In this document: positions 26,649 to 43,832 of the stretch, piece by piece
How the letters are laid out: each line of letters opens with the position of its first letter
How positions within the stretch are numbered: position 1 is the stretch's first letter
Origin: Scyliorhinus canicula
Taxonomy: Eukaryota
DNA length: 64,000 bases
Direction: 5' to 3'
Assembly: GCF_902713615.1 (NCBI RefSeq)
Contig: NW_024055497.1
Span: 1,903,584 to 1,967,583 of the forward strand
Notes under the pieces: model-generated
Told to the model about the DNA's origin: nothing
The model's input: only the letters and a program-made list of their open reading frames with translations
Database searches by the model: none
Made by a program: the position numbers and the translations under genes

Positions 26649-27881
26649 ATGGAGAAACTATTGAAATGTGGGGACTGTGGGAAGGGATTCAATTACCCAT
26701 CTGCATTGGATATTCATCGACGCATTCACACTGGAGAGAGGCCTTACACCTGCACTGTGTGTGGGAAAGGATTTGCTTACTCATCCAGCCTGTATACACA
26801 TCAGCGTGTTCATACTGGCGAGAGGCCATTCACTTGCCTCGAATGTGGGAAGGGATGTAATGCTTTATCAAGCCTTCTGATTCACCAGCAAGTTCACTCT
26901 GATCAGAGACCGTTTCAATGTTCTGATTGTGACAAAAACTTTAAAAGCACAAAGGACTTGCTGAGACACCAGCGCACTCACATGGAGGTGAGGCCTTTCA
27001 CCTGCTCAGTGTGTGGGAAGGGATTCACTCAGTCATCCCACCTTCTAACACACCAACTTGTTCACTTTGATAAGAGACCTTTTCAATGTTCGCACTGTGA
27101 GAAGTGTTTTAAAAGTAAAAATGATTTACAAGCCCATCAACGCACACACACTGGGGAGAAGCCGTTCACCTGCTCTCTCTGTCAGAGGAGATTTGGACGT
27201 TTATCCCAGCTACAGACACACCAGCGAGTTCACTCTGATCAGAGACCATTTCAATGTTCTGATTGTGAGAAGAGCTTTAAAAGCAAACAGGATCTGGTGA
27301 CACACCAGCGAGTTCACACTGGAGAGCGGCCATTCACCTGCTCTGTGTGTGGGAAGGGATTCACCCATTCATCCCACCGTCTGAGACACCAGCGCATTCA
27401 CACTGGAGAGAGGCCGTTCATTTGCTCTGTGTGTGGTAAGGGATTTGCTGATTCGCCCCACCTTCTGATACACGAGCGAATTCACACTGGAGAAAGACCT
27501 TTCACTTGCTCCATGTGTGGAAAGGGATTCACTCAGCCATCCCAGCTTGCTGTACATCAACTTGTTCACACTGATCACAGACCTTTTAAATGTTCTGACT
27601 GTGAGAAGAGCTTTAAGTGCACAAAGGACCTTCTGAGACACCACCAAGTTCACACTGGGGAGAGGTCATTCACCTGCTCCATGTGTGGGAAGAGATTTGC
27701 TCAGTCTTCCCACCTGCTGAGACACCGGCAGGTTCACACTGGGGAGAGATCATTCAGCTGCTCCATGTGTGGGAAGAGATTTGCTCGGTCATCCAATCTG
27801 CTGAGACACCAGCGAGTTCACAAGTCACTGCAGGGGTTAGATTCTGCTTTTGCTGCTGCTGTTAATACCATGCAGGACTGA
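26649..27881 (+). CDS. C2H2 zinc-finger protein C, 14 fingers plus ~19-aa tail
   Basis: 410-aa uninterrupted ORF; acceptor TTTTACAG at 26321-26322. Confidence 0.92.
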   Translation: MEKLLKCGDCGKGFNYPSALDIHRRIHTGERPYTCTVCGKGFAYSSSLYTHQRVHTGERPFTCLECGKGCNALSSLLIHQQVHSDQRPFQCSDCDKNFKSTKDLLRHQRTHMEVRPFTCSVCGKGFTQSSHLLTHQLVHFDKRPFQCSHCEKCFKSKNDLQAHQRTHTGEKPFTCSLCQRRFGRLSQLQTHQRVHSDQRPFQCSDCEKSFKSKQDLVTHQRVHTGERPFTCSVCGKGFTHSSHRLRHQRIHTGERPFICSVCGKGFADSPHLLIHERIHTGERPFTCSMCGKGFTQPSQLAVHQLVHTDHRPFKCSDCEKSFKCTKDLLRHHQVHTGERSFTCSMCGKRFAQSSHLLRHRQVHTGERSFSCSMCGKRFARSSNLLRHQRVHKSLQGLDSAFAAAVNTMQD

Positions 27882-27914
27882 ACCATGTTTATTCTGTTAT
27901 TAAGGAGGTTGGAG

Positions 27915-29157
27915 TGGGCACTTAGATAATCTCAGTGCAATTAGGCAGAATCAATATAATTTATGAAAGGGAAATCATGTTTGACTAATTTATTGGAGTT
28001 CTTTGAGGAAGTAACAAGCAATGTGGATAAAGGGGAGACCTGTGGATGTGATGTATTTAGATTTCCAGCAGGCACTTGACAAGGTGCCACTTAATGTTCA
28101 CTCCACAAAATAAAAGCCCATTGTGTAGCTGGTAACGGCATGGACAGAGGATTGGTTAGCGAACAGGAAACATTGTGGAGGTAAAAACGAGTCATTTTTG
28201 ATGTAACCTGTGGAGTGCCACAGGGATCAGTACTGGAGGCTCAACTATTTTCAGGACTTAGTTGACAGGATCAAAAGTACTGTTGCAAAATTTGCTGTTG
28301 CGACAAAGGTATGGAGTAAGATAAGTTGTGAGTGACCATAAGGAGTCTGTAAAGGGTGCAGATAGGGTAAATAAGTGAGCTACAATTTGGCAGATTGAAC
28401 ACAGTGTGAGGAAATGTGAACTTGTTCACTTTTGCAGGAAGAATAAAAAAGCAACATATTGGATTTAATTTATTTACTGTCACGCGTAACGAGGTACAGT
28501 GAAAAATATTGCTCTACGCACAGCTCAGGAAGATCATTCCATACATGAAAATAAAATGCATACGGCAAACATAAAATACACAATGTAAATACATAGACAC
28601 AGACATACGGAGCATACGGAGTGTAGTATTACTCAGTAGAGAAGATGTGTGAAGAGAATGTAAAAGAGAAAGGTTAGTGATAGTGTTAGTGTTAGAATTA
28701 AGTTTTAAGAGATTAGTATGATTATCGGAGATGTAAGAAGTGGATCTGTGTGAGAGAGCTCACAGAGAGTCGCCACACTCCGGCGCCATCTTGCATTGCT
28801 TATTTAAATATACAGAGATTGTAGCTCCGAGGTACAGAGAGATCTGGGTGTATTGATACATGAATCAGGATCAGTTACTCTGCAGATACAGTACATGATT
28901 GGGAAGGTAAAGGGAATGTTGCTGTTTATTGCAAGGGGAAAGTACTGCAGTTGTACAGGGTATTGGTGAGACCACATCCAAAGTACTGTGTACGGTTTTG
29001 GTCTCCTTCTTTCAGAAAGGACATAATTTAATTCAAAACTGGTCAGAGACGGTTTACTTGACTGGGTGAGGAGTTATCATAGGAGGAAAACTTGGCGAAG
29101 CTGTGACTGTATCCACTTGAGTTTGGAAGAATGAGAGGGGATCTGATTGAAACATAT
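27915..29157 (+). mobile_element. Decayed CR1 LINE with nested Rex1-type 3' end (28460-28795, -)
   Basis: GGGAAATCATGTTTGACTAAT, GTGCCACAGGGATCAGT, ATGAGAGGGGATCTGATTGAAAC CR1 landmarks. Confidence 0.75.
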
Positions 29158-29690
29158 GGGGCTGGATTCTCCCATTCTGGGGTTATGGCCCCACGCCGGC
29201 GTGGGAACGGTGGCATTTTACACCAGACAAAATGGTGTAAAACGGTTACCGATTCCCCGTTTTGCTGGGGGCTAGCATGTCGGCTGCGTAGAGCACCCGG
29301 CTCGAGCTGCCAATATGCCCTGGAGAATTGCCGGGTCTGTGGCCGCACATGCGCTTGGCGGCCCCTGAGCGGCCGCGCTGTGCTACATGGCAGAGGCCAC
29401 TCGCGGACCCGGCCTGCAAAATAATGCCTCCCCTTTGGCTGGCTCGCACGTCACGCACCACCCCCACAGTGCCCCCAGCCCCAAATAAAGAATTCCCTGC
29501 CCATGTATCAACCCTCCCCCGACTGTGGTGGCGCTGGACTGAGTCCGCAGCTGCCATGCCGAGTTCCCGACAGGATGGGACCACACGCGACCCACACCGT
29601 CGGGAACTTGGCTGGTCGGGGGCGGAGCATCCGGAGGCGGATCTCAGGCAAAGTTCTGAGGCCATCGATACGTGGCGCGGCGTACCATTG
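29158..29690. mobile_element. GC-rich Harbinger-like MITE, truncated
   Basis: Starts GGGGCTGGATTCTCCC, CpG-rich, interrupts CR1. Confidence 0.5.
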
Positions 29691-31698
29691 TGATTTAAAC
29701 AGTGATTGATAAAGGTTCAGCATAACTTACCTGCTTTAAAAAAAAAAAAAATTTAGAGTACCAAACTCATTTCCGGTTTCCTCCCAAAAGTCCCGAAAGA
29801 TGTGCTTGTTAGGTGAATTAGACATTCTGAATTCTTCCTCAGTGTACCCGAACAGGCGCCAGTATGTGGTGACGAGGGGATTTTCACAGTAACTTCATTG
29901 CTGTGTTAATGTAAGCCGACTTGTGACACTAATAAAGATTATTATTAATATCCACCTTGTTAATGTGCAATCAATTTTTACCTCTCTTTATTTCTTTAAT
30001 ATTAATCAGTATTGACGAGCTGTGGTGTAACCCTGTGTTTGGAGTTTGTCTCATGGCGGTAACATTGAACATCGAGGTGATAGAAGAACCCAGACCGTGG
30101 ATATCTGAAGAACTATACCAAACTGCATTATGGGCTCAAAATGCAAAGTATGGTGGTCAATTTAGTCAAGTCACAGCCTTCCCAGAATTAGCAATGGCTA
30201 CAAATGAGTTGAATTGTGCAGGTGAACTCGCCTCAACCTGTGAGAAAGATGTGTTTGTTTGACGTGATAAAGGTGGTTGGAGCAGTCAATGCTTATGTAG
30301 TACATTGTATATCTTGTGTTGCCCTATTATATATTTTCTTGAATTTTATTTAATTCCCTTTTCTTCCCATGTACTGAATGATCTGTTGAGCTGCTTGCAG
30401 AAAAATACTTTTCACTGTATCTCGGTACACGTGACAATAAACAAATCCATCCATCCATCTGTGGATTGATAACAGTGTCAGAGGTCACAAAGTAGAGTTA
30501 GGCTCACTCGATTCGTTCAGACATCACCTTGTAAGAGGCCCAGGACATAAGAACAATGGAGAAGACAGTGATGTCATTGAAAACCAATTAAATGGGCTTA
30601 AAACAGGTCTTACCTAATAGTTTTTATTCCTTTACCGAGGTCAAAGCCCACATCCCGTTAATGAATGAAACAAAGGTGTGTGTCTCTATCTAAGTCAGCA
30701 TTTAATTGCCCATCCCTAATTGCCCTTGAGAAGATGGTGGTGAGCTGACTTCTTGAACTGCTGCAGTCCCTATAGTATCACCCACAGTGCGGTTAGGGAG
30801 GAAGTACCAGGATTCTGACCCAGGGACAGTGAAGGAACGGCGATATATTTCCACAGCAAGATGGTGAGTGTTACAATCCCAGTGATGTAATAACTGAATG
30901 GGAAGATCCCAGAATGGGAACCCTGGCTCAAAAGACTCTAACTTTGTTTAGAAAATGTGAAGCAACAGAGTCACAGGATTGCCAATTAGCTTTCAACAAC
31001 AAAAACAAACATTTATTAAACATGAAAAGTCTGGCTATGATACAAAATTCCTTCACTCCTACTTATCTTCACAAACGTACACAAATTTCAAGGACAACAC
31101 AGGTTACTACATATCTTTTGCTTTAATGTTCTCAGTGGACACACAGTCCCTTTAAACCCATAGGTTGACCATGATCAGACAACCCCCGCCCCCCCCACTC
31201 ATTTCTCGAGTTGGAGCGGAATTTGGCCACACAGTCATAGGTGTGTAAGGAGTATAGTGGGTGCTCTAAGTTGCCTATCCTCACTGATTGTGGCCTGTGG
31301 GTTAGAAAGTTCAGGATCCAGTCGCAGAGAGAGGAGCCAAGGCCACGGAGTTTGGAGATGGGTTTTGTCGGAATGATGGTGCTGAAGGCTGAGCTTCAGT
31401 CGATAAATAGGGAGTGGGAAATAGGTGTCTCTGGCTGTTCCAGGGTAGAGTGCAGGATGAAATGTGAAGTGATGGATTCTGGTCAGAAGAAAGGGTCCAG
31501 TTCTGAAGGGAGGGCCTTGTAGTGAGGGGAGTAGCATCCCTGCCTCTACAGGCACAAGTTCCGTGTTTGAATCCCGCCCCAGGACTTGGTGACCAAGCAA
31601 GGCGTGTTCGCAAGGCGACCAAAAGAGGGTGAGTGTCAACCTGGGCAACATTTACGAACACGCCAATAACAGATGGTAAGAGCAGGAGAGGTTCCCGG

Positions 31699-32555
31699 TG
31701 TCGTGTTATGTACTCTGGGAAAACACGGGCTGCAACTGGATGCAGCTTTCACCAAAAGATACTCCAGACCTTGAAGTTAGTTCAATCTGATTTATTGAAC
31801 CTCTCGCACAGTTAGCACAGTTCTCTATGAGTTCGACTCTCTGCTAACCTGAGTGTGGTTACTCTGTCTGACTGAACCAGACTACCTCTTAGCGACGTGC
31901 TGGAGGTGTGATACTGTACATACACCCTGACTCACTCTGTCTATGTTCATCGGTGGAAAGAGGCGGAGTGTGAGTGTCTCGTGCCTTTTATCGTCAGATC
32001 CCACCCCTAAGTGTCCTGCCTGCTCATTGGGCATGTCCTGGTCTCTGTGTTCATTAGCTGCCTGTCTGTATATCATTATCTGCATATCATGACATCTCCC
32101 CTTTTTTTGTTTTGTTGGCACATGTGACCATACTTACATGTGGTGGCATATATTAACATATTTACAAGCGATGGCATATGTGAACGTATTTACATGTGAA
32201 GACAGTTGTCTAATGTGAGAAAACAGAACATAGCAAACAAAACAAATGTTCATAAGTCCAGTCTCTGGGGCTGGCGTCTGATCCTGATTGACCGCCGGAG
32301 AAAGGTGGTGGTGGGGACGACGGTGCCTTGACTGGCGGGATGGAAGCCTGTCCGATGGCCTCGTGAGTCGAGGTATCAGGAGGTGGCAAAACAACGGACG
32401 GAAACGGAGAAGAAAGCGGTTGCGGGCAGGCAACTTTGCGCAGTGCCCGTCTGTTTCGACGCACAACAGAACCTGCTCATTGGGCATGTCCTGTTCTCTG
32501 TGTTCATCAGCTGCCTGTCTGTAAATCATTATCTGCATGTCTGCATATCATGACA
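31699..32555 (-). mobile_element. Internally deleted Gypsy-like LTR retrotransposon
   Basis: Full 396-bp LTR TG..CA at 31699-32094 next to a polypurine tract (AAAAAAAGGGGAGA on -); RRNRRALR post-integrase motif; 85-bp second-LTR stub 32471-32555; TSD CCCGG/CCTGG. Confidence 0.8.
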
Positions 32556-32789
32556 CCTGGTTGATCACAGTGGGGCCCCAAACAAAATAAAGGACCCCGG
32601 CGACAGACTCGCGACCGGCTCCGGGGATTAATAGCCACAGAAACGTGCCTCGGTGCTCAACCGGTTGCCTAGTTGCCGTCGAGAAGGTGGCGGTGGACCG
32701 CCATCTTGAAACGCTGCTGTCTCACGTGGTGTAGGTCCGCCCACTGTGCTGGTAGGGAGGGGGCAGTGGATATAGGAACAGACATCGTT

Positions 32790-33172
32790 GAGGGCAGTTG
32801 AGAGTTTGGGGGGACAAATCATTGGGAATGTTCGGGTGGGGGGATAGACAGAGTGGATAGTCAGAGGCTTTTCCCCAAGAGTAGAGGGGTCAATTACAAG
32901 GGGGCAGAGGTTTAAGATGTGAGGGGCAAGGTTTAGAGGAGATGTACGAGGCATGTTTTTTACACAGAGGGTAGTGGGTGCCTGGAACTCGCTGCCGGAG
33001 GAGGTGGTGGAAGCAGGGATGATAGTGACGTTTAAGGGGCATCTTGACAAATAAATGAATAGGATCGGAATAGAGGGATACAGACCCAGGAAATGTAGAA
33101 GATTGTAGTTTAGATGCGCAGCGTGGTCGGGCCGAAGGGCCTGTTCCTGTGCTGTACTTTTCTTTGTTCTTT
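32790..33172 (+). mobile_element. CR1 LINE 3' end
   Basis: TTTTTTACACAGAGGGTAGTGGGTGCCTGGAACTCGCTGCC..GGCCTGTTCCTGTGCTGTAC tail. Confidence 0.85.
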
Positions 33173-33544
33173 GTAATAATCGCTTATTGTCACGAGTAAG
33201 CTTCAATGAAGTTACTGTGAAAAGCCCCTAGTCGCCACATTCCGGTGCCTGTTCGGGGAGGCCGGTACGGGAATTGAATCCACGCCGCTGGCATTGTTCT
33301 GCATTACAAGCCAGCTGTTTAGCCCACTGTGCTAAACCAGTCCCTATGGCTGCTTGAGAGCGCTGTTGATGACCTCTTTCATCACTTTGCTGATTATGAA
33401 GGTTAGGCTAATGGAGGGGCGGGGAGGGGGGGGGAGAGAGATAATTGTCCTGTTTCTTGAGTACTGGACAGGCCTGGGGAATTTCCCACATACAATGGGT
33501 TAACACTGCTACCTCAGCCACAAGGCTCGATTCCTGGCTTGGGT

Positions 33545-34252
33545 TATAGGGGGCGGGGCTGGGGTACAGGGGCCTGGGGGTAGAAGGGGCGGGGCTGGGG
33601 CCAGGGTGGCTGTGCTACAGGAGGCGGGGCTGAGGGTACAAGGGGCGGGGCTGCGGTATTAGGGGCGGGGTAGGAGGCGGGGCCGGGGCCAGCCCCAGTA
33701 GGCGGGCGTGGGCTCAATGGGCGGGGCTGGGGCGGGCTCTGGGGGCGGGCCTGAGGTTACAGGGGGCGGGGCCGGGCTCAGTGGGCGGCGCCAGCCCCAG
33801 GGGGCGGGGCCTGCACACGCCATGGCGCTGTGAGAGGACTCCCTTCTCTTCAGCCTGCCCCGCTGCCGGGGGGCGGGACTGGGGGCGGGGCCGGGCTCAG
33901 TGGGTGGGACCAGTCACAGCGAGCGGGGTGGGGCTGCGGTGGCGCTGTGGCGGGGCCTGGTTCCCGCCGTGGCGCTGTGTGAGGACTCCCTCCTCTGTGA
34001 CCTGCCCGGCTGCCGGGGGGCGGGGCTGGGCTCAGTGCGCAGGGCCGGGGGCGGTGTCTGGTTCCCGCCATGGTGCTGTGTGAGGACTCCCTCCTCAGTA
34101 ACCTGCCCGGCTGCCTGGGGGCGGGGCCGGGCTCAGTGGGCGTGGCCTGGTTCCCGCCATGGCGCTGTGTGAGGACTCCCTCCTCAGTAACCTGCCCGGC
34201 TGCCGGGGCTGGGCTCAGTGCGCAGGACAGGGGGCGGGGTCTGGTTCCCGCC
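33545..34252 (+). promoter_or_regulatory. GC-box-rich CpG island upstream of CCNB1IP1 with tandem copies of the start region
   Basis: More than ten GGGGCGGGG Sp1-type boxes; four extra copies of CGCC(A/G)TGG(C/T)GCTGTG.GAGGACTCCCT. Confidence 0.8.
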
Positions 34253-34549
34253 ATGGCGCTGTGTGAGGACTCCCTCCTCTGTAACCTGCCCGGCTGCCGC
34301 TGCTGCCTGTCCGGCTTCGCCTGGGTCACCGCCTGTTCGCACGTGTTCTGTGACCAGCACGGCAGCGGGCAGTTCAGCCGCTCCCCGGCCCTGTGCCCGG
34401 CCTGTGGCACCGCCCTGTCCGGCAAACGGGACATTGTCCGAACCGACCTCAACCCGCCCGAGGACTACAAAGGCATGGTGCTGTCCGGCCTCCGGCCACA
34501 CACCGTGCTGGAGATCGCCGGCCGGGCACTGGCCTTCTGGGGCTACCAG
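34253..34549 (+). CDS. CCNB1IP1: CCNB1IP1/HEI10 E3 ligase, coding exon 1 (RING domain, 99 aa)
   Basis: MALCEDSLLCNLPGCRCCLSGFAWVTACSHVFCDQHGSGQFSRSPALCPAC..RALAFWGYQ matches human HEI10 MSLCEDMLLCNYRKCRIKLSGYAWVTACSHIFCDQHGSG; donor CAG|GTCAGC at 34550. Confidence 0.96.
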
Positions 34550-35070
34550 GTCAGCACCCAGCACCCACCCAGCACCCCGGGGTACCCCACCCAGCACCCT
34601 GGGGTGCCCAGCACCCATCCAGCACCCTGGGGTGCTGTCCGGCCTCTGGCCACACACCGTGCTGGAGATCGCCGGCCGGGCACTGGCCTTCTGGGGCTAC
34701 CAGGTCAGCACCCCGGAGTGGCCACACCCAGCACCCAGGGGTGCCACCCCACCCACCCAGCACCCCGGGGTGCTGTCCTTCCTCCGGCCACACACCATGC
34801 TGGAGATCGCTGGCCGGGCACTGGCCTTCTGGGGCTACCAGGTCAGCACCCCGGGGTGCCCCACCCACCCAGCACCCCGGAGTGCCCCCCACCCAGCACC
34901 CCGGGGTGCTGTCCGGCCTCCGGCCACACACCGTGCTGGAGATCGCCAACCGGGCACTGGCCTTCTGGGGCTAACAGGTCAGCACCCCGGGGTGCCCCAC
35001 CCCATCAGCACCCCGGGGTGCCCCTCCCACCCAGCACCCCAGGGTGCACCACACCCAACACCCCAGGGAC
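34550..35070 (+). repeat. Tandem copies of the exon-1 3' end and donor in a CAGCACCCCGGGGTG microrepeat
   Basis: GGTGCTGTCC..TTCTGGGGCTA(C/A)CAGGTCAGCACC recurs three more times (donors at 34704, 34842, 34978). Confidence 0.9.
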
Positions 35071-35767
35071 CCCTCCCCCGTCTGCCCGTCGCAGGGTGCT
35101 GACGTCTCCCCGTCCTTCGGAGTCAATACCTCCCGCCCCACCCAACAACTCCCCTCGTGCCCCCCTCCCAGGCTACTGAACCCCTTCCTCCCCAAGCCCC
35201 TCCGCTCCCGATCACCCAATAACGGGGAGAGCGCGATTCGATTCTGTTTGTGTGACCGCAGGGGGGAACTGGATGACAAAGGGGATGGATCAACGGTAGA
35301 CAGCGGCACACGGTTTTGCCCCTGTGCCACCTAAAGCACTGGGCTCGGTCATGGGCACCCCCTCCCTGAGTTGTGGTATTGTTGGTGGGGGAGGTGGGGT
35401 GAGGAACGGATATAGGGCAGATTCACGACAGGCCGAGGTTCATACTCTCTCCGGTGTAGGAGAATAAACGGCAACCCAGAGGAGGAATCTAGTCCACGTC
35501 TACTTTGTCAAAACCTTTTATCATCTTATACATGTCAATTAGATCTCTGCTTCTTCTGAACTTGAGACAGTCTCGGCCTAAACTGCTCATAAGACAAACC
35601 CCTCATCTCTGCAATCAATCTAGTGAACCTCCTCTGTACTGCCTCTCACACAACTACATCCCTCCTCAAATAAGGGGATCAAAACTGTACTCCAGATGCG
35701 GTCTCCCCAATGCCCTGTACAGTTGTAGCAACAACCCCCGGCTTTTATACTCTATCCCTCAAGCTAT

Positions 35768-37130
35768 TGTTATGGGCCAGGGTTTAGAGAACCCCAAAGT
35801 GTATCATGGAGTTCACCTGACCCACAACTTTTACTAGATTGTGGTATGAGGAGCACACAGCCCACTCCACAGGTGAGGTACAGCAGAAATGGAAAAGTAT
35901 TTTTTAAAGCAAAACAATGTTTATTCTATGAACTCACCTTTTTAAAACATACAGTGAACATCTTAGCAACCATTAATTCAAATACAACCCCCAAAGAATA
36001 CAACACTAAATAATCCTTTAAGCTTTCCATTTAACATCCATAAGACTTAAAACACCTTTTACCAGAAGCACACCAGGTTAAAGTCACTACTGTTATTAGT
36101 TTTAAATCACCAGGATTGATTTACAGCCTTTAAATTACAGAGAGAGATTCATACCCCTTCTGTCTGCGACTGCAGCTATCCAGCTCTGAAAGGGAAACTA
36201 CAACACACCCTGCAGCAAACAACCTAAAATGAAAGTAAAAAGCTGACAGACAGCCCAGCTCCACCCACTCTCTGACATCACTGCAGTAGTAAAAACCCAT
36301 TTCTTAAAGGTACTCTCACTACAGATATTTATAAACACACCCATTTATAAACACCCATTTTTAAAAAAAAATTTAGATTACCCAATTATTTTTTCAATTA
36401 AGGGGCAATTTAGCGTGGCCAATCCACCTACTCTGCACATTTTTGGGTTGTGGGGGCAAAACCCACGCAGACACGGGGAGAACGTGCAAACTCCACACGG
36501 ACAGTGACCCAGAGCCGGGATCGAACCTGGGACCTCAGCGCCGTGAGGCGGTTGTGCTAACCACTAGGCCACCGTGCTGCCCTTAAAACACCCATTTTTT
36601 AAAGGTACTGTCACTACAGATATTTATATACACACCCATTTATAAACACCCATTTCTTAAAGGTACTCTCACTACAGATATTTGTATACATACCCATTAA
36701 TCAACACCCATTTCTTAAAGGTACTCTCACATGACACCCTCCCCCAAAAAGAAACCTTCAACTCTAAGATGGTTTCATTTTTCACCTTTTCACCATCCTT
36801 TAAGCAATGCACACAGAAAATATACTTTATCGTTTCAAAAACACACGCAAACAGGTATAATGATATAGTCAATTTTTGCCCCCGTTCTTCTTTCCCCAAT
36901 TGAAATCCTTCTTGATTGACAGTCTCTTTGAACAAGGAGGTCTCTATACGATCCCTTTGTGTCCGCCAATTGTAACTGTCGTGTTTCATGGCCATTTTCT
37001 GAAGTTCAAACTCTCTCTCGATCTTTTTCCCTGATCTGTATCTCCCTTTCTCTTTCTTTTTGTTCTGCTGGGGCTATTCTTTCTGTTTTCCTCTCTCTCT
37101 TTTTCCTCTCTCTCTCTTCTCTCACATGAT
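35768..37130 (-). mobile_element. Deleted LTR element inserted in a CR1 copy (CR1 at ~35490-35767 and ~37130-37610), with nested V-SINE
   Basis: LTR-like TGTTATGGG..CTCACATGACA (to ~36736) followed by PPT-like CCCTCCCCCA; internal ~58-bp repeats; second CTCTCACATGA end at ~37120. Confidence 0.6.
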
Positions 37131-37614
37131 ATTACAAAGGCTAGAATCCCACTTGCCTTCCATATTCCCTGCTGTACCGACGTGCTAATTTCCTGCGATT
37201 GATGCACGAGTACACCCAGATCCCTCTCCAACAAAACACTTTGAAGTGTCTCTGCATTGATAATAAATTGCCTTTCCATCTTTCTGTCCAAAATGGATAA
37301 CCTCATACTCATCCACATGAAACTCCGTCTACCACATTGGCCCAATCACCTAACCTATCTACAACCATTTGTATTATTTCCTCATTGCAAAGGTGTCAAC
37401 TATCTACCTTATCGATCGATGCTCCTCATTATTTTATAGACCTCTATAAGATCGCCCCGAAGCCTCCTACGCTCCAGGAAAAAAGTCCCAGCCCATCCAC
37501 CCTCTCCTTATCACTCAGACCATCAAGTCCTGGTCGCATCCTCGTAAATCTCTTCCACACTCTTTCTCATCTAACAATATCCTTCCTGTCATAGGGTGAC
37601 CCGACCTGAACGCA

Positions 37615-37902
37615 ACACTGTGGCTTCACCGCGCCAGGGTCCCGGGTTCGATTCCCCGCTGGGACGCTGTCTGTGCGGAGTCTGCACGTTCTCCCCCGTG
37701 TCTGCGTGGATTTCCTCCAGGTGCTACGGTTTCCTCACACAGTCCAAAGACGTGCAGGTTAGGTGGATTGGACTTGCTAAATTGTCCCTCAGTATCCAAA
37801 AAAGGTTAGGGGGAAGGGGGTTATTAGGTTACGGGGATAGGGTGGATGTGAGGGCTTAAGTGGGTCAGTGCCGACTCCTTCTGCACTGTATGTTCTATGT
37901 TC
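37615..37902 (+). mobile_element. V-SINE in CCNB1IP1 intron 1, sense orientation
   Basis: GGGTTCGATTCCCC box B, V core, TGTTCTATGTTC tail. Confidence 0.85.
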
Positions 37903-38284
37903 AGGGATCTCTCACCCCACCCTCCCACATATAGACCACACACAGAACAGACAGTGCAGAAGGAGGCCATTAGGCCCATGGACGACTTCAACAAGAAGTT
38001 ATTTAGTTGTCCCGATTCTTGGGGAATGGTTTGAGGGGACTGGTATGGGGAAGGTGGATAAACACGAGAGAGTGAGGAAGAGAAGAATGTGGTGTTGGGG
38101 TGAGATGGAGAAGGGGGTAGCAGGAGTTGGGCTGAATGGCCTGTTTTGGTGGTGGCAGTCCGGTCTAATTCAATGATTTCAGTCCAGACGGGTCAGTTAG
38201 AGTTGCTTCCACTCTCCCCCCACCGATTCCATGGAATCCAGTCTCCGTTTGGCTGGGGCGAATTTTAACCTGCGGTTCTTTCAG

Positions 38285-38615
38285 ATCCACCAGGAGCGGA
38301 TGTACCAGGAGTCCGCCTACAGCAAAGCGGAGGGCCGGCTGAAGCAAATGGACAAACTCTACACTCAGCAGCTGCAGGGCAAGGACATGGAGGTGAGCAA
38401 CAGCCGCAGTGAGGTGTCCTCGCTCAAGAAGATGCTGGAGGAGTACAAGAAGAAGTACAGCGAGGTGTCGGAGAAGCTGATGGACAGGAACCGGCAGTAC
38501 CAGAAGCTGCAAGGCTTCTACGACAGCCTGCGCCTGCGCAGCATGGCCATGGTGGGCGGGGGCGATGCCCCGGCGGCAGTGGGCCCCGCCGGAGCCCTGT
38601 ACGGCATGCCTTTAG
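38285..38615 (+). CDS. CCNB1IP1: CCNB1IP1/HEI10 coding exon 2 (coiled coil)
   Basis: IHQERMYQESAYSKAEGRLKQMDKLYTQQ..RQYQKLQGFYDSLRLR matches HEI10; TTTCAG acceptor, TAG|GTACG donor, phase 0 to 1. Confidence 0.96.
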
Positions 38616-38759
38616 GTACGAGCACCGCAGTCACGTCCCACGGAAAACCCTCCTTGGCAACCCGAGTTCAGTTGCCCGCGCCATTTGGACAACGTGACCA
38701 CGAGTGCTTTCGAGTTCCAGCCCGAAATCCCACCGGCCGTCACGTCCATGTCCTGGAGA

Positions 38760-41195
38760 AGACTTTAGCCCGGCCAATCCACTTAACCTGCACATCGTTA
38801 GACACTAAGGGACAATTTAGCATGGCCTGTCCACCTAAACTGCACATTGTTGGACACTAAGGGACAATTTAGCAGGGCCAATCCACCCAAACTGCACATC
38901 TTTGAACACTAAGAAGTGACAATTTAGCACGGCCAATCCCCCTAACCTGTACATCTTTGGACACTAATGGACAATTTAACATGGCCAATCCACCCAACCC
39001 TGTACATCTTTAGCCACTAAGGGACAATTTAGAACGGCCAATCCACTTATCCTGCGCATCTTTGATCACTAAGGGACAATTTCGCATGGCCAATCCACCT
39101 AATCTACACACCTTTGTAGACTAAAGGACAATTTAGCACGGCCAATCCACCTAACCTACACACCTTTGGAGACTAAGGGACAATTTAGCACGGCCAATCC
39201 ACCTAACCTACACACCTTTGGAGACTAAGGGGCAATTTAGCACGGCCAATCCACCTAACCTGCACATCTTTGGACACTAAGGGACAATTTAACATGGCCA
39301 ATCCACCTAACCTGCACAGCTTTGACACTAAGGGACAATTTAGCACGGCCAAACCACCTAACGTGCACATCTTTGGACACTAAAGGATGATTTAGCACGG
39401 CCAATCTACCTAACCTGCACCTCTTTGACACTGAGGGACAATTTAGCACGGCCAATCTACCTAACCTACACATCTTTGGAGAGTAAGGGACAATATCGCA
39501 CAGCCAATCTACCTAACCTGCACCTCTTTGACACTGATGGACAATTTAGCACGGCCAATCTACCTAACCTACACATCTTTGGAGACTAAGAGGCAATTTA
39601 GCAGGGCCAATTCACCTATCCTGCACATCTTTGGACACAAAGGGACAATTTAGCATGGCCAATCCACCTAACCTGCACATCTTTGGACACAAAGGGACAA
39701 TTTATCATGGCCAATCCACCTAACCTGCACATCTTTGGACACTAAGAGACAATTTAGCGTGGCCGATCCACTTAACCTGCACATCTCTGGTCACTAAGCA
39801 ACAATTTAGCACGGCCAATCCACCTAACCTGCACATCTTTGGACACTAAGGGACAATTTAGCCTGGCCAATCCACCTAACCTGCACATCTTTGGACACAC
39901 AGGGACAATTTAGCATGGTCAATCCACCTAACCTGCACATCTTTGGACACTAAGGGACAATTTAGCCTCGCCAATCCCCCTAACCTGCACATCTTTGGAC
40001 ACTAAGGGACAATTTAGCATGGCCAATCCCCCTAACCAGAAAGCGCAATTCAGCGCGGTCAATCCCCCTAACCTGGACATCTTTGGATACTAAGGGGCAA
40101 TTTAACACGGCCAATCCATCTAACCTGGACATCTTTGGACACGGAAGGGGCAATTTAGCACGGCCAATCTACCTAACCTACACATCTTTGGAGACTAAGA
40201 GGCAATTTAGCAGGGCCAATTCACCTATCCTGCACATCTTTGGATACTAAGGGGCAATTTAACACGGCCAATCCATCTAACCTGGACATCTTTGGACACG
40301 GAAGGGGCAATTTAGCACGGCCAATCTACCTAACCTACACATTTTTGGAGACTAAGAGGCAATTTAGCAGGGCCAATTCACCTATCCTGCACATCTTTGG
40401 ACACAAAGGGACAATTTAGCATGGCCAATCCACCTAACCTGCACCTCTTTGACACTGAGGGACAATTTAGCACGGCCAATCTACCTAACCTACACATCTT
40501 TGGAGACTAAGAGGCAATTTAGCAGGGCCAATTCACCTATCCTGCACATCTTTGGACACAAAGGGACAATTTAGCATGGCCAATCCACCTAACCTGCACA
40601 TCTTTGGACACAAAGGGACAATTTATCATGGCCAATCCACCTAACCTGCACATCTTTGGACACTAAGAGACAATTTAGCGTGGCCGATCCACCTAACCTG
40701 CACATCTCTGGTCACTAAGCAACAATTTAGCACGGCCAATCCAGCTAACCTGCACATCTTTGGACACTAAGGGACAATTTAGCCTGGCCAATCCCCCTAA
40801 CCTGCACATCTTTGGACACGAAGGGACAATTTAGCACGGCCAATCCACCTAACCTGCACATCTTTGGACACTCAGGGACAATTTAGCATGGTCAATCCAC
40901 CTAACCTGCACATCTTTGGACACTAAGGGACAATTTAGCCTCGCCAATCCCCCTAACCTGCACATCTTTGGACACTAAGGGACAATTTAGCATGGCCAAT
41001 CCCCCTAACCAGAAAACGCAATTCAGCACGGTCAATCCCCCTAACCTGGACATCTTTGGATACTAAGGGGCAATTTAACACGGCCAATCCATTTTGCCTG
41101 GACATCTTTGGACACGGAAGGGGCAATTTAGCACGGCTAATCTACCTATCCTGCACATCTTGGTCACTAAGCGCCAATTTAACATGGCCAATTCA
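38760..41195. repeat. 52-bp satellite derived from the V-SINE core (~47 units)
   Basis: Unit CTAAGGGACAATTTAGCATGGCCAATCCACCTAACCTGCACATCTTTGGACA, antisense to the SINE core. Confidence 0.95.
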
Positions 41196-41227
41196 CGTAA
41201 CGGTGCGGGGGGGGGGGGGGGGGGGAG

Positions 41228-43565
41228 TGGGATACGGACTAGACTGGCTGTGGAGAGGGGATCAGACTGGCTGTGGAGAGTGGATTAGCCTGGGTGTGGA
41301 GGGGGTCTTAGCCTGGGTGTGGAGAGTGGATTAGCCTGGGCATGGAGAGGGGATTAGCCTGGGTGTGGAGAGAGGATTAGACTGGGTGTGGAGAGGGAAA
41401 TAGACTGGATGTGGAGAGGGGATTAGACTGACTGTGGGGGGGGATTAGACTGGGTGTGGAGAGGGGATTAGACTGGGTGTGGAGGGGAATTGACTGGGTG
41501 TGGAGAAGGGATTAGACGGTGTGGAGAGTGGATTAGACTGGGTGTGGAGAGGGGATTAGACTGGGTGTGGAGGGGAATTGACTGGGTGTGGAGAGGGGAT
41601 TAGCCTGGATGTGGAGAGGGGATTAGACTGGGTGTGGAGAAGGGATTAGACGGTGTGGAGAGTGGATTAGACTGGGTGTGGAGAGGGGATTAGACTGGGT
41701 GTGGAGAGGGGATTAGACTGGGTGTGGAGAGGGGATTAGACAGGGTGTGGAGAGCGGATTAGACAGGGTGTGGAGAGGGGATTAGACTGGGTGTGGAGAG
41801 GGGATTAGCCTGGGTGGGGAGAGGGGATTAGACTGGGTGTGGAGAGGGGATTAGACTGGGTGTGGAGAGGGGATTAGACTGGGTGAGAGGGGATTAGACT
41901 GTGTGGAGAGGGGATTAGACTGGGTGGAGAGGGGATTAGACTGGGTGTGGAGAGGGGATTAGACTGGGTGTGGAGAGGGGATTAGACTGGTGTGGATAGG
42001 GGATTAGACTGGTGTGGAGAGGGATTAGACTGGGTGTGGAGAGGGGAATTAGACTGGGTGTGGAGGAGGGGATTAGACTGGGTGTGGAGAGGGGATTAGA
42101 CTGGGTGTGGAGAGGGGATTAGACTGGGGTGTGGAGAGGGGATTAGACTGGGTGTGGAGAGGGGATTAGACTGGGTGTGGAGAGGGGATTAGACTGGGTG
42201 TGGAGGGGATTAGACTGGGTGTGGAGAGGGGATTAGACTGGGTGTGGAGAGGGGATTAGACTGGGTGTGGAGAGGGGATTAGACTGGGTGTGGAGAGGGA
42301 TTAGACTGGGTGGAGAGGGGATTAGACTGGGTGTGAGAGGGGATTAGACTGGGTGTGGAGAGGGGATTAGACTGGGTGTGGAGAGGGGATTAGACTGGGT
42401 GTGGAGAGGGGATTAGACTGGGTGTGGAGAGGGGATTAGACTGGGTGTGGAGAGGGGATTAGACTGGGTGTGGAGAGGGGATTAGACTGGGTGTGGAGAG
42501 GGGATTAGACTGGGTGTGGAGAGGGGATTAGACTGGGTGTGGAGAGGGGATTAGACTGGGTGTGGAGAGGGGATTAGACTGGGTGTGGAGAGGGGATTAG
42601 ACTGGGTGTGGAGAGGGGATTAGACTGGGTGTGGAGAGGGGATTAGACTGGGTGTGGAGAGGGGATTAGACTGGGTGTGGAGAGGGGATTAGACTGGGTG
42701 TGGAGAGGGGATTAGACTGGGTGTGGAGAGGGGATTAGACTGGGTGTGGAGAGGGGATTAGACTGGGTGTGGAGAGGGGATTAGACTGGGTGTGGAGAGG
42801 GGATTAGACTGGGTGTGGAGAGGGGATTAGACTGGGTGTGGAGAGGGGATTAGACTGGGTGTGGAGAGGGGATTAGACTGGGTGTGGAGAGGGATTAGAC
42901 TGGGTGTGGAGAGGGGATTAGACTGGGTGTGGAGAGGGGATTAGACTGGGTGTGGAGAGGGGATTAGACTGGGTGTGGAGAGGGGATTAGCCTGGGTGTG
43001 GAGAGGGGATTAGACTGGGTGTGGAGAGGGGGTTAGATGGTGTCGAGAGGGGATTAGACTGGGTGTGGAGAGGGGATTAGACTGGGTGTGGAGAGGGGAT
43101 TAGACTGGGTGTGGAGAGGGGATTAGACTGGGTGTGGAGAGGGGATTAGACTGGGTGTGGAGAGGGGATTAGACTGGGTGTGGAGAGGGGATTAGACTGG
43201 GTGTGGAGAGGGGATTAGACTGGGTGTGGAGAGGGGATTAGCCTGGGTGTGGAGAGGGGATTAGACTGGGTGTGGAGAGTGGATTAGACTGGGTGTGGAG
43301 AGGGGATTAGACTGGGTGTGGATAGGGGATTAGACTGGGTGTGGAGAGGGGATTAGACTGTGTGTGGAGAGGGGATTAGACTGGGTGTGGAGAGGGGATT
43401 AGACTGGGTGTGGAGGGGGGATTAGACTGGGTGTGGAGAGGGGATCAGCCTGGGTCTGGATAGGGGATTAGACTGGGTGTGGAGAGGGGATTAGACTGGG
43501 TGTGGAGACTGGTTTAGACTCCACGCACAGAGAGGTGAGATTGGGTGTGGATAGAGGGATTAGCC
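41228..43565. repeat. 23-bp G-rich minisatellite (~100 units)
   Basis: Unit GATTAGACTGGGTGTGGAGAGGG, highly homogeneous in the centre. Confidence 0.97.
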
Positions 43566-43617
43566 TCCGTGCGGCATTAATGAAAATGCTGGTCACACAT
43601 TCGTTTCTCACCAACAG

Positions 43618-43832
43618 GCAGGACCTCCCAGTTTGTTCCGATGGAGAATCCCCTGAGGAAGGAGTCCTCCGAGGGTGACTTCCACCTTCGGCCGTCCTTC
43701 TTTGGCTCGCCGGCGCCCGATGGCCCAGGGGGCTTTTTCGGCTTCTCTCCAGGTGAAGACCGGGCTCCACATCATCACCGGCCTCAGGACCCCAATCCAG
43801 GGCCCTCCAGCTCCTTCAAGATGAAGATGTGA
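43618..43832 (+). CDS. CCNB1IP1: CCNB1IP1/HEI10 coding exon 3
   Basis: CAACAG acceptor in phase 1; EGDFHLRPSFFGSP..FFGFSP..FKMKM matches human DGDFQFRPFFAGSP..FFSF..FKVKRI; total CDS 843 nt, 280 aa. Confidence 0.92.

Follow-up and report, generated by a model that had tools for sequence, protein, structure and literature searches.

Five tandem copies of the start-codon region in a probable promoter minisatellite of a catshark HEI10 (CCNB1IP1) paralogue

Variable-number tandem repeats (VNTRs) are present in the human promoters of INS and MAOA. HEI10 is a dosage-sensitive pro-crossover factor, as seen in plant and mouse work, and any element that alters HEI10 output could matter for recombination rate. 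In apple, the R6 repeat of the MYB10 promoter is a minisatellite that multiplies transcription-factor sites (PMC5671642). At DDX3Y, the MSY2 minisatellite gives rise to testis-specific distal transcriptional start sites (TSSs), and the resulting long leaders are thought to control translation (PMC3039753). Translational control by upstream open reading frames (uORFs), including uORFs that overlap the main start, has been reviewed (PMC3368165). Here we describe a HEI10 gene of the catshark Scyliorhinus canicula in which a tandem array just upstream of the gene repeats the start codon itself.

The gene lies in a 64-kb window of catshark DNA, the window being the whole stretch of 64,000 nucleotides that was analysed, which is free of N. 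The first-pass annotation of this window had recognised HEI10, and comparison bore the identification out, as exon 1 is 72 to 76% identical to vertebrate CCNB1IP1 (E of about 1e-45 to 1e-48). The coding sequence spliced from 34253 reproduces XP_038643952.1 ("E3 ubiquitin-protein ligase CCNB1IP1-like", Scyliorhinus canicula) exactly over all 280 residues, and its span of 9,580 nt is the same as that recorded for XP_038643952.1 on an unplaced 2.0-Mb scaffold of GCA_902713615.2. Exon 1 contains the N-terminal RING-type zinc finger block CxxxxC...WVTACSH[IV]FC and is matched by Pfam zf-RING_5 with E=2.6e-5 and 24.5 bits, under the 27.9-bit gathering score. As in CCNB1IP1/HEI10 orthologues, the N-terminal RING exon ends in ...FWxYQ and the exon phase is equal; at the level of the protein, other shark CCNB1IP1 sequences are 70 to 86% identical to that of the catshark. 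For the S. torazame protein, similarity reaches only about 86%. In the public annotation, a minus-strand gene model of 795 aa (24253-51255 and beyond) covers the whole locus, and HEI10 would thus be nested in its intron.

Table 1. Repeats and coding exons at the catshark HEI10 locus, in window coordinates.
Feature	Position	Strand	Details
GC-box minisatellite	33536..33811	+	TRF periods 19/20/36; 5' of start-codon array
U1	33775-33893	+	119 bp; start copy 33822, reading ATG GCG CTG TGA after loss of 1 nt
U2	33894-34028	+	135 bp; GTG at 33969 in start copy
U3	34029-34129	+	101 bp; ATG 34070 in frame with main ORF
U4	34130-34211	+	82 bp; ATG 34159 begins out-of-frame ORF
U5	34212-34299	+	88 bp; continues into exon; start codon in use 34253
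HEI10 coding exon 1	34253..34549	+	99 codons, RING finger; donor GT 34550
Second array	34570..35047	+	period 136; 3.5 copies of the final ~75 nt of exon 1 with GT donor
HEI10 coding exon 2	38285..38615	+	exact splice reconstruction of protein
Intron-2 satellite 1	38764-41201		52-bp unit, 104/156-bp higher order, ~43 copies
Intron-2 satellite 2	41236-43520		23-bp unit, ~100 copies, 93% matches
HEI10 coding exon 3	43618..43832	+	stop codon included; exact splice reconstruction

Five head-to-tail units, U1 to U5, each 82 to 135 bp long, occupy positions 33775-34299 of the plus strand (Table 1), with borders set by anchoring on GGCTCAGTG. All five carry the pattern CC(A/G)TGG(C/T)GCTGTG.GAGGACTCCCT, and the five start-region copies reported earlier at 33822, 33969, 34070, 34159 and 34253 each proved exact by pattern match and reading frame. 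Likewise the GC boxes said to separate the copies were located, as GGGGCGGGG, at 33801, 33882, 34017, 34118 and 34231. Pairwise identity between units is 77 to 94% overall; U1 is the most diverged unit (77 to 80% against the other four), the remaining units are 84 to 94% identical among themselves, and stretches of 41 and 39 nt are identical between units. Tandem Repeats Finder reported periods of 94, 101 and 183 over 33949-34299, with scores of 474 to 578. A 25-nt degenerate pattern found five sites on the plus strand versus none in each of 100 dinucleotide-preserving shuffles. We conclude that the start region is repeated in tandem beyond chance expectation.

Upstream of the array lies a GC-box minisatellite whose unit, GGGGCGGGGCCGGGCTCAG, recurs between the start-region copies, where it forms the spacers of U1 to U5. 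All 11 occurrences of GGGGCGGGG in the 64-kb window fall within 33416-34231 and in a single orientation (plus), and the sole four occurrences of TTCCCGCC in the window, also all on the plus strand, are at 33961, 34062, 34151 and 34245. The motif complement differs from unit to unit. U1 is without TTCCCGCC, and U4 is without an intact GGGGCGGGG, carrying only the degenerate GGGCGTGG, with the nearest intact box at 34118 in U3. U2 additionally contains a partial GGTGGCGCTGTG at about 33938, and in U5 the GC box is followed by TTCCCGCC, then by the palindrome CGCCATGGCG (34249) and the start codon. A possible reading of this palindrome as a YY1 site, after Xi et al. 2007 (as cited in PMC8384218), was not adopted. 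TCCCGC, a site for E2F6, is enriched in the CpG islands that lie close to the TSSs of meiosis genes (PMC8195999). Judged by motif, the GC boxes and the TCCCGC/E2F-type sites of the array are putative factor binding sites. GC skew is +0.35 to +0.49 across 33400-33800 and turns negative past 34300.

The reading frames of the upstream copies agree with those described by the first-pass annotation, and the effects that it predicted for the individual upstream ATGs are those that the sequence implies. Copy 1 opens a 3-codon uORF, and copy 2 reads GTG where the others read ATG. The ATG of copy 3 lies in frame, 183 nt or 61 codons 5' of the main start, and the frame between the two is open. Copy 4 begins a 35-codon ORF in another frame, which overlaps the main start and terminates at 34266, and copy 5 is the start codon of the public annotation (XP_038643952.1). 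The context GCCATGG surrounds all four ATGs (33822, 34070, 34159 and 34253), and the contexts of the three upstream AUGs are of the kind that captures scanning ribosomes. The upstream copies look like decaying relics: copy 2 has become GTG, copy 1 is frameshifted to TGA and copy 4 is off frame.

One explanation of the array is that it is an artefact, a repeat mis-expanded or mis-joined during assembly. The scaffold is unplaced and 2.0 Mb long, and the region is multi-copy and repeat rich, all of which would favor such an error. Units that differ by 6 to 23%, however, are not inflated or collapsed identical copies. Moreover, independent contigs cross three of the four unit junctions, namely that of copies 1 and 2 (33735-34002), that of copies 3 and 4 (34087-34205) and that of copies 4 and 5 (34190-34465, the last with no mismatch), and DNA-type runs of this species contain 58 to 63% of the upstream words. 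On the combined strength of unit divergence, junction-spanning contigs and DNA-type word shares, we consider an assembly artefact extremely improbable and discarded it.

The 3' end of exon 1 is also repeated, in a second array that begins within intron 1 (Table 1). We conclude that exon 1 has been drawn into minisatellites at both of its ends. RNA-like contigs extend from 34888 to about 35795 at 15 to 25% of exon-1 depth, and the annotated RING-less isoform X3 has as its first coding piece MRSTQPTPQ, located at 35846-35872 and followed by a GT donor. From the contig coverage and the location of MRSTQPTPQ, part of intron 1 would be an alternative exon or retained. Intron 2 of HEI10 is nearly filled by two satellites.

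Transcription of the array was assessed by comparing 33450-35249 with three RNA-like contig sets from three studies (X1, X3 and X15) and with one raw RNA run (X20). The Logan contigs used are unitigs built from k-mers and break wherever words recur, so a contig end cannot be equated with the end of a transcript, and gaps between contigs are uninformative. In X3, a 290-nt contig matched 34190-34465 with no mismatch at a depth of 5.5 and carried the CRCC codons typical of this locus. Its 5' flank consisted of CTCTTCCGATCT, which is the end of an Illumina adapter, and 2 nt preceding 34190. A fixed, adapter-bordered end at 34190 is as expected from a transcript 5' end and, at a depth of 5.5, is suggestive of one. 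In X1, exon 1 had a depth of 120 to 256, a contig at 34232-34282 had 39 and the bin 34170-34229 had 0, with scattered bins at a depth of 3 to 8 further upstream. In X15, depth was about 860 to 1870 over exon 1 and 4.4 over 33735-34002, which contains copies 1 and 2; in the RNA-like runs these two copies reached roughly 0.2 to 0.5% of exon depth. X20 yielded three reads only, all of them within exon 1, and these hold no TSS information. We interpret these depths to suggest that most transcripts start after copy 4.

The contigs do not all derive from the locus in the window. At 34302 (G>C) and 34304 (T>C), all depth in X1 and X15 reads C and C, which is the CRSR type of a paralogue rather than the CRCC type of the window. 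Thus, the abundant X1 and X15 contigs describe the gene family, and the locus-specific support is the single X3 contig. The window's own CRCC type was seen in X3 only and at low depth, and this locus may be a weakly expressed member of the HEI10 family.

The share of words from 33760-34165 found in each run provided a second measure of upstream transcription. That share was 0.00 to 0.13 in the RNA-like runs of studies P1, P2 and P4, 0.24 to 0.34 in the runs of study P6 and 0.58 to 0.63 in the DNA-type runs X25 to X28. No contig covered 34003-34086 in the RNA-like runs X1, X3 and X15. One X15 contig, at 34087-34205, had a depth of 177, or about 10 to 20% of exon depth, with four mismatches, three of them near the contig ends. 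This contig may represent the copy 3-4 junction of a paralogue, with a copy-4-type ATG in 10 to 20% of transcripts. Alternatively, it may represent the region just 5' of the true start in a paralogue with a short-type last spacer. The contig ends at 34087, 34205 and 34270 were considered as TSSs and rejected, as they coincide with the borders of words identical between units and are graph breaks. An intron in the 5' untranslated region was rejected for the present; an acceptor-like CTCCCTCCTCAG is present in copies 3 and 4, but no run contained joints or exon-like loose ends, and the loose end in X3 is adapter.

The first-pass annotation had proposed that the copies form a ladder of uORFs in which the choice of TSS switches translation. 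On this model, TSS choice, or the copy number of the array, would tune HEI10 protein output. A transcript starting 5' of 34070 would encode HEI10 with a 61-aa N-terminal extension, one starting within 34071-34159 would carry the overlapping uORF and have its main start blocked, and one starting after 34159 would be translated normally. The frames and Kozak contexts are as that proposal requires, each unit could act as a promoter by virtue of its GC box and E2F-type site, the X15 contig at 34087-34205 may hold a copy-4-type ATG, and transcripts of DDX3Y that start in the MSY2 minisatellite in testis offer a precedent (PMC3039753). Against it, the 5' limits of the exon-1 contigs, 34190 and 34232, both lie past the ATG of copy 4, the RNA-like runs of the three studies hold hardly any of the upstream words, annotation lists no isoform with an N-terminal extension, neutral decay is seen in the upstream copies and the bamboo shark is without the repeat. 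The sequence component of the proposal stands, its switching of TSSs finds little support in the RNA, and we regard tuning by the ladder as unlikely.

The proposal had named its own counterevidence, namely TSSs confined to the interval 34165-34252, from which the upstream ATGs would never be transcribed. Both contig limits fall inside that interval, and being contig limits rather than mapped caps, they speak to where transcripts mainly begin and stop short of proving exclusivity. The fallback offered with the proposal, that the array is only a promoter VNTR, fits the contig limits and the depth gradient best; the word "only" goes beyond the evidence, given the contig at 34087-34205 and the potential effect of NMD. 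RNAs bearing uORFs could be NMD targets, in which case steady-state depth would understate upstream initiation. Minor, tissue-specific or germline-specific use of upstream TSSs is possible and compatible with these data, which derive from runs of unspecified tissue.

NMD is central to another explanation, in which all units fire as promoters and the upstream units serve as decoys, their uORF-bearing transcripts being translated unproductively and removed by NMD. With such an array, each initiation event would yield less net output, an effect that steady-state RNA would mask. The GC box, TTCCCGCC and the palindrome are common to units, and depth falls stepwise upstream rather than to zero (134, 39 and 8 in X1; about 900, 177 and 4 in X15). 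A gradient of this sort is, however, equally expected from dispersed initiation at a CpG island together with paralogue and k-mer effects, and initiation at the upstream units was not directly seen. The motifs are also unevenly shared, with TTCCCGCC missing from U1 and an intact GGGGCGGGG from U4. We consider a decoy array improbable.

The N-extended protein was sought separately. None of the 12 annotated CCNB1IP1-like proteins of S. canicula carries an N-terminal extension, and they begin with MALC(E/D)DSLL or at an internal exon. When the extended ORF (34070-34561) was used as a protein query, matches were confined to the exon 1 part with none to the extension, and those matches that do have upstream extensions carry unrelated read-through sequence. 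The frame from 34070 is open, and mRNA or protein support for an N-extended proteoform was not found in these comparisons. Annotation should place the start at 34253 and leave out the extended ORF of 341 aa.

We conclude that the array is probably a lineage-specific, promoter-proximal minisatellite at one catshark HEI10 paralogue and that the usual leader probably lacks an upstream AUG. A G-rich 19-bp GC-box repeat 5' of the gene would have expanded by unequal exchange or slippage, and the expanding unit would have taken in not only the GC box, the TCCCGC/E2F-type site and the palindrome CGCCATGGCG but also the opening 15 codons (45 nt) of the coding sequence. The outcome would be the present five units of 82 to 135 bp, with the protein start served by the last unit alone. 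Steady-state mRNA would begin mainly in the 3' part of U4 or in the spacer before U5, at about 34190-34232, giving a usual leader of about 20 to 65 nt that contains no upstream ATG, and U1 to U3 would be untranscribed promoter DNA with additional GC boxes and E2F-type sites. The anatomy of the repeat, the identity of the gene, its exon model, the 5' limits of the contigs and the gradient in depth are observed; from them we infer the exact TSS, the binding of factors and how the array arose. Two properties of a promoter minisatellite, tandem units beyond chance and transcription-factor motifs within the units, are present as read from the DNA sequence, and a location of the array mostly upstream of the TSS would agree with the limits and depths of the contigs, which are not cap-based. 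The repeated start codons would then mostly be untranscribed by-products of a minisatellite that engulfed a core promoter and the first codons.

The bamboo shark Chiloscyllium punctatum provided a comparison outside the catsharks. Its exon 1, at 431-727 of contig BEZZ01142908.1, is 86% identical in DNA sequence. It has a single start codon, and the start region is not repeated within the 430 nt that precede the exon. Bamboo shark exon 1 also has minisatellites on both sides, one at 1-151 with period 19 and unit TGGGGGAGTGTCTCAGTGC and the other at 751-956 in intron 1 with period 43 to 46, but these arrays end short of the exon, whereas the catshark arrays include the exon ends. In both sharks, a period-19 G-rich repeat with CTCAGTG lies upstream of HEI10. 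A shared ancestral upstream minisatellite in sharks was considered, but blastn-short gave no significant upstream similarity, and common ancestry of the two repeats is unproven. In teleost contigs (L002 926, L003 1384 and L004 575), the HEI10 ATG lies 2 nt past a splice acceptor (YAG/CCATG, for example ttcctAG/CCATG and gtcccAG/CCATG, with the slash at the junction). Among the taxa sampled, only the two sharks have the start codon directly in a CpG-island promoter. With a single copy in the bamboo shark and an acceptor before the ATG in teleosts, the uORFs appear not to be conserved between species. Compared with CCNB1IP1 orthologues of other vertebrates, the start region is repeated in the catshark only, where the gene is multi-copy. 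Catshark TTCCCGCCATG resembles the teleost acceptor-ATG junction but is without the AG, and the E2F-like site may, by this resemblance, have descended from an old polypyrimidine tract.

HEI10/CCNB1IP1 gene models are found on at least seven unplaced catshark scaffolds (146,521 to 4,131,383 nt, GCA_902713615.2). The paralogue proteins are 96 to 99.6% alike and fall into three N-terminal types, CRCC, CRCR and CRSR. At all four loci examined, a gene of 404 to 410 aa ends 4.0 to 7.3 kb before the HEI10 start (6.4 to 7.3 kb at three of them); in the window, where the pair spans 26649-43832, this neighbor is a C2H2 zinc-finger (ZNF) gene. The distance from ZNF to HEI10 varies among paralogues (6,372, 7,122 and 7,260 nt). 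The pattern suggests that a segment with HEI10, a dosage-sensitive gene for crossovers, and the neighboring ZNF gene was amplified recently, and some of the copies may be haplotigs. The array predates this amplification, because its units differ by 6 to 23% versus 0.4 to 4% for the paralogue proteins and because a paralogue contig aligns at 96.6% across the copy 3-4 junction. Our literature search found no publication about CCNB1IP1 of Scyliorhinus, nor any about amplification of HEI10 in sharks. The amplification of HEI10 with its ZNF neighbor and the presence of both ends of exon 1 in arrays are more unusual than the start-codon array itself.

A further reading joins array and amplification in the control of dosage. 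In it, the start-codon minisatellite is a tunable element, upstream units active in germ cells yield uORF-blocked or N-extended HEI10, the number of units at each of at least seven paralogues sets the amount of active HEI10, and amplification and repeat length co-evolve to adjust the number of crossovers. We consider this reading very unlikely and favor the promoter minisatellite described above.

Like known promoter VNTRs, the catshark array consists of head-to-tail units of tens of base pairs, lies just 5' of a gene and carries binding-site motifs in each unit. It differs in that its unit includes the start codon and 15 codons, such that each added unit brings a strong-context ATG. As with MSY2 at DDX3Y in primate testis, a minisatellite has been amplified 5' of a germline-relevant gene. 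The distal TSSs of DDX3Y were mapped by RACE, however, whereas the RNA data here put most 5' ends 3' of the copy-4 ATG. Units of MSY2, unlike those of the catshark, are without start-codon copies. In relation to uORF control (PMC3368165), the ORF at 34159 would be an overlapping uORF in strong context if transcribed, but it is not conserved, and the catshark copies look like decaying duplicates rather than maintained uORFs. Promoter minisatellites are a known kind of feature. The evidence suggests that the upstream ATGs are not in regular use, and by duplicating a start codon in strong Kozak context the catshark array represents a variant of that kind.
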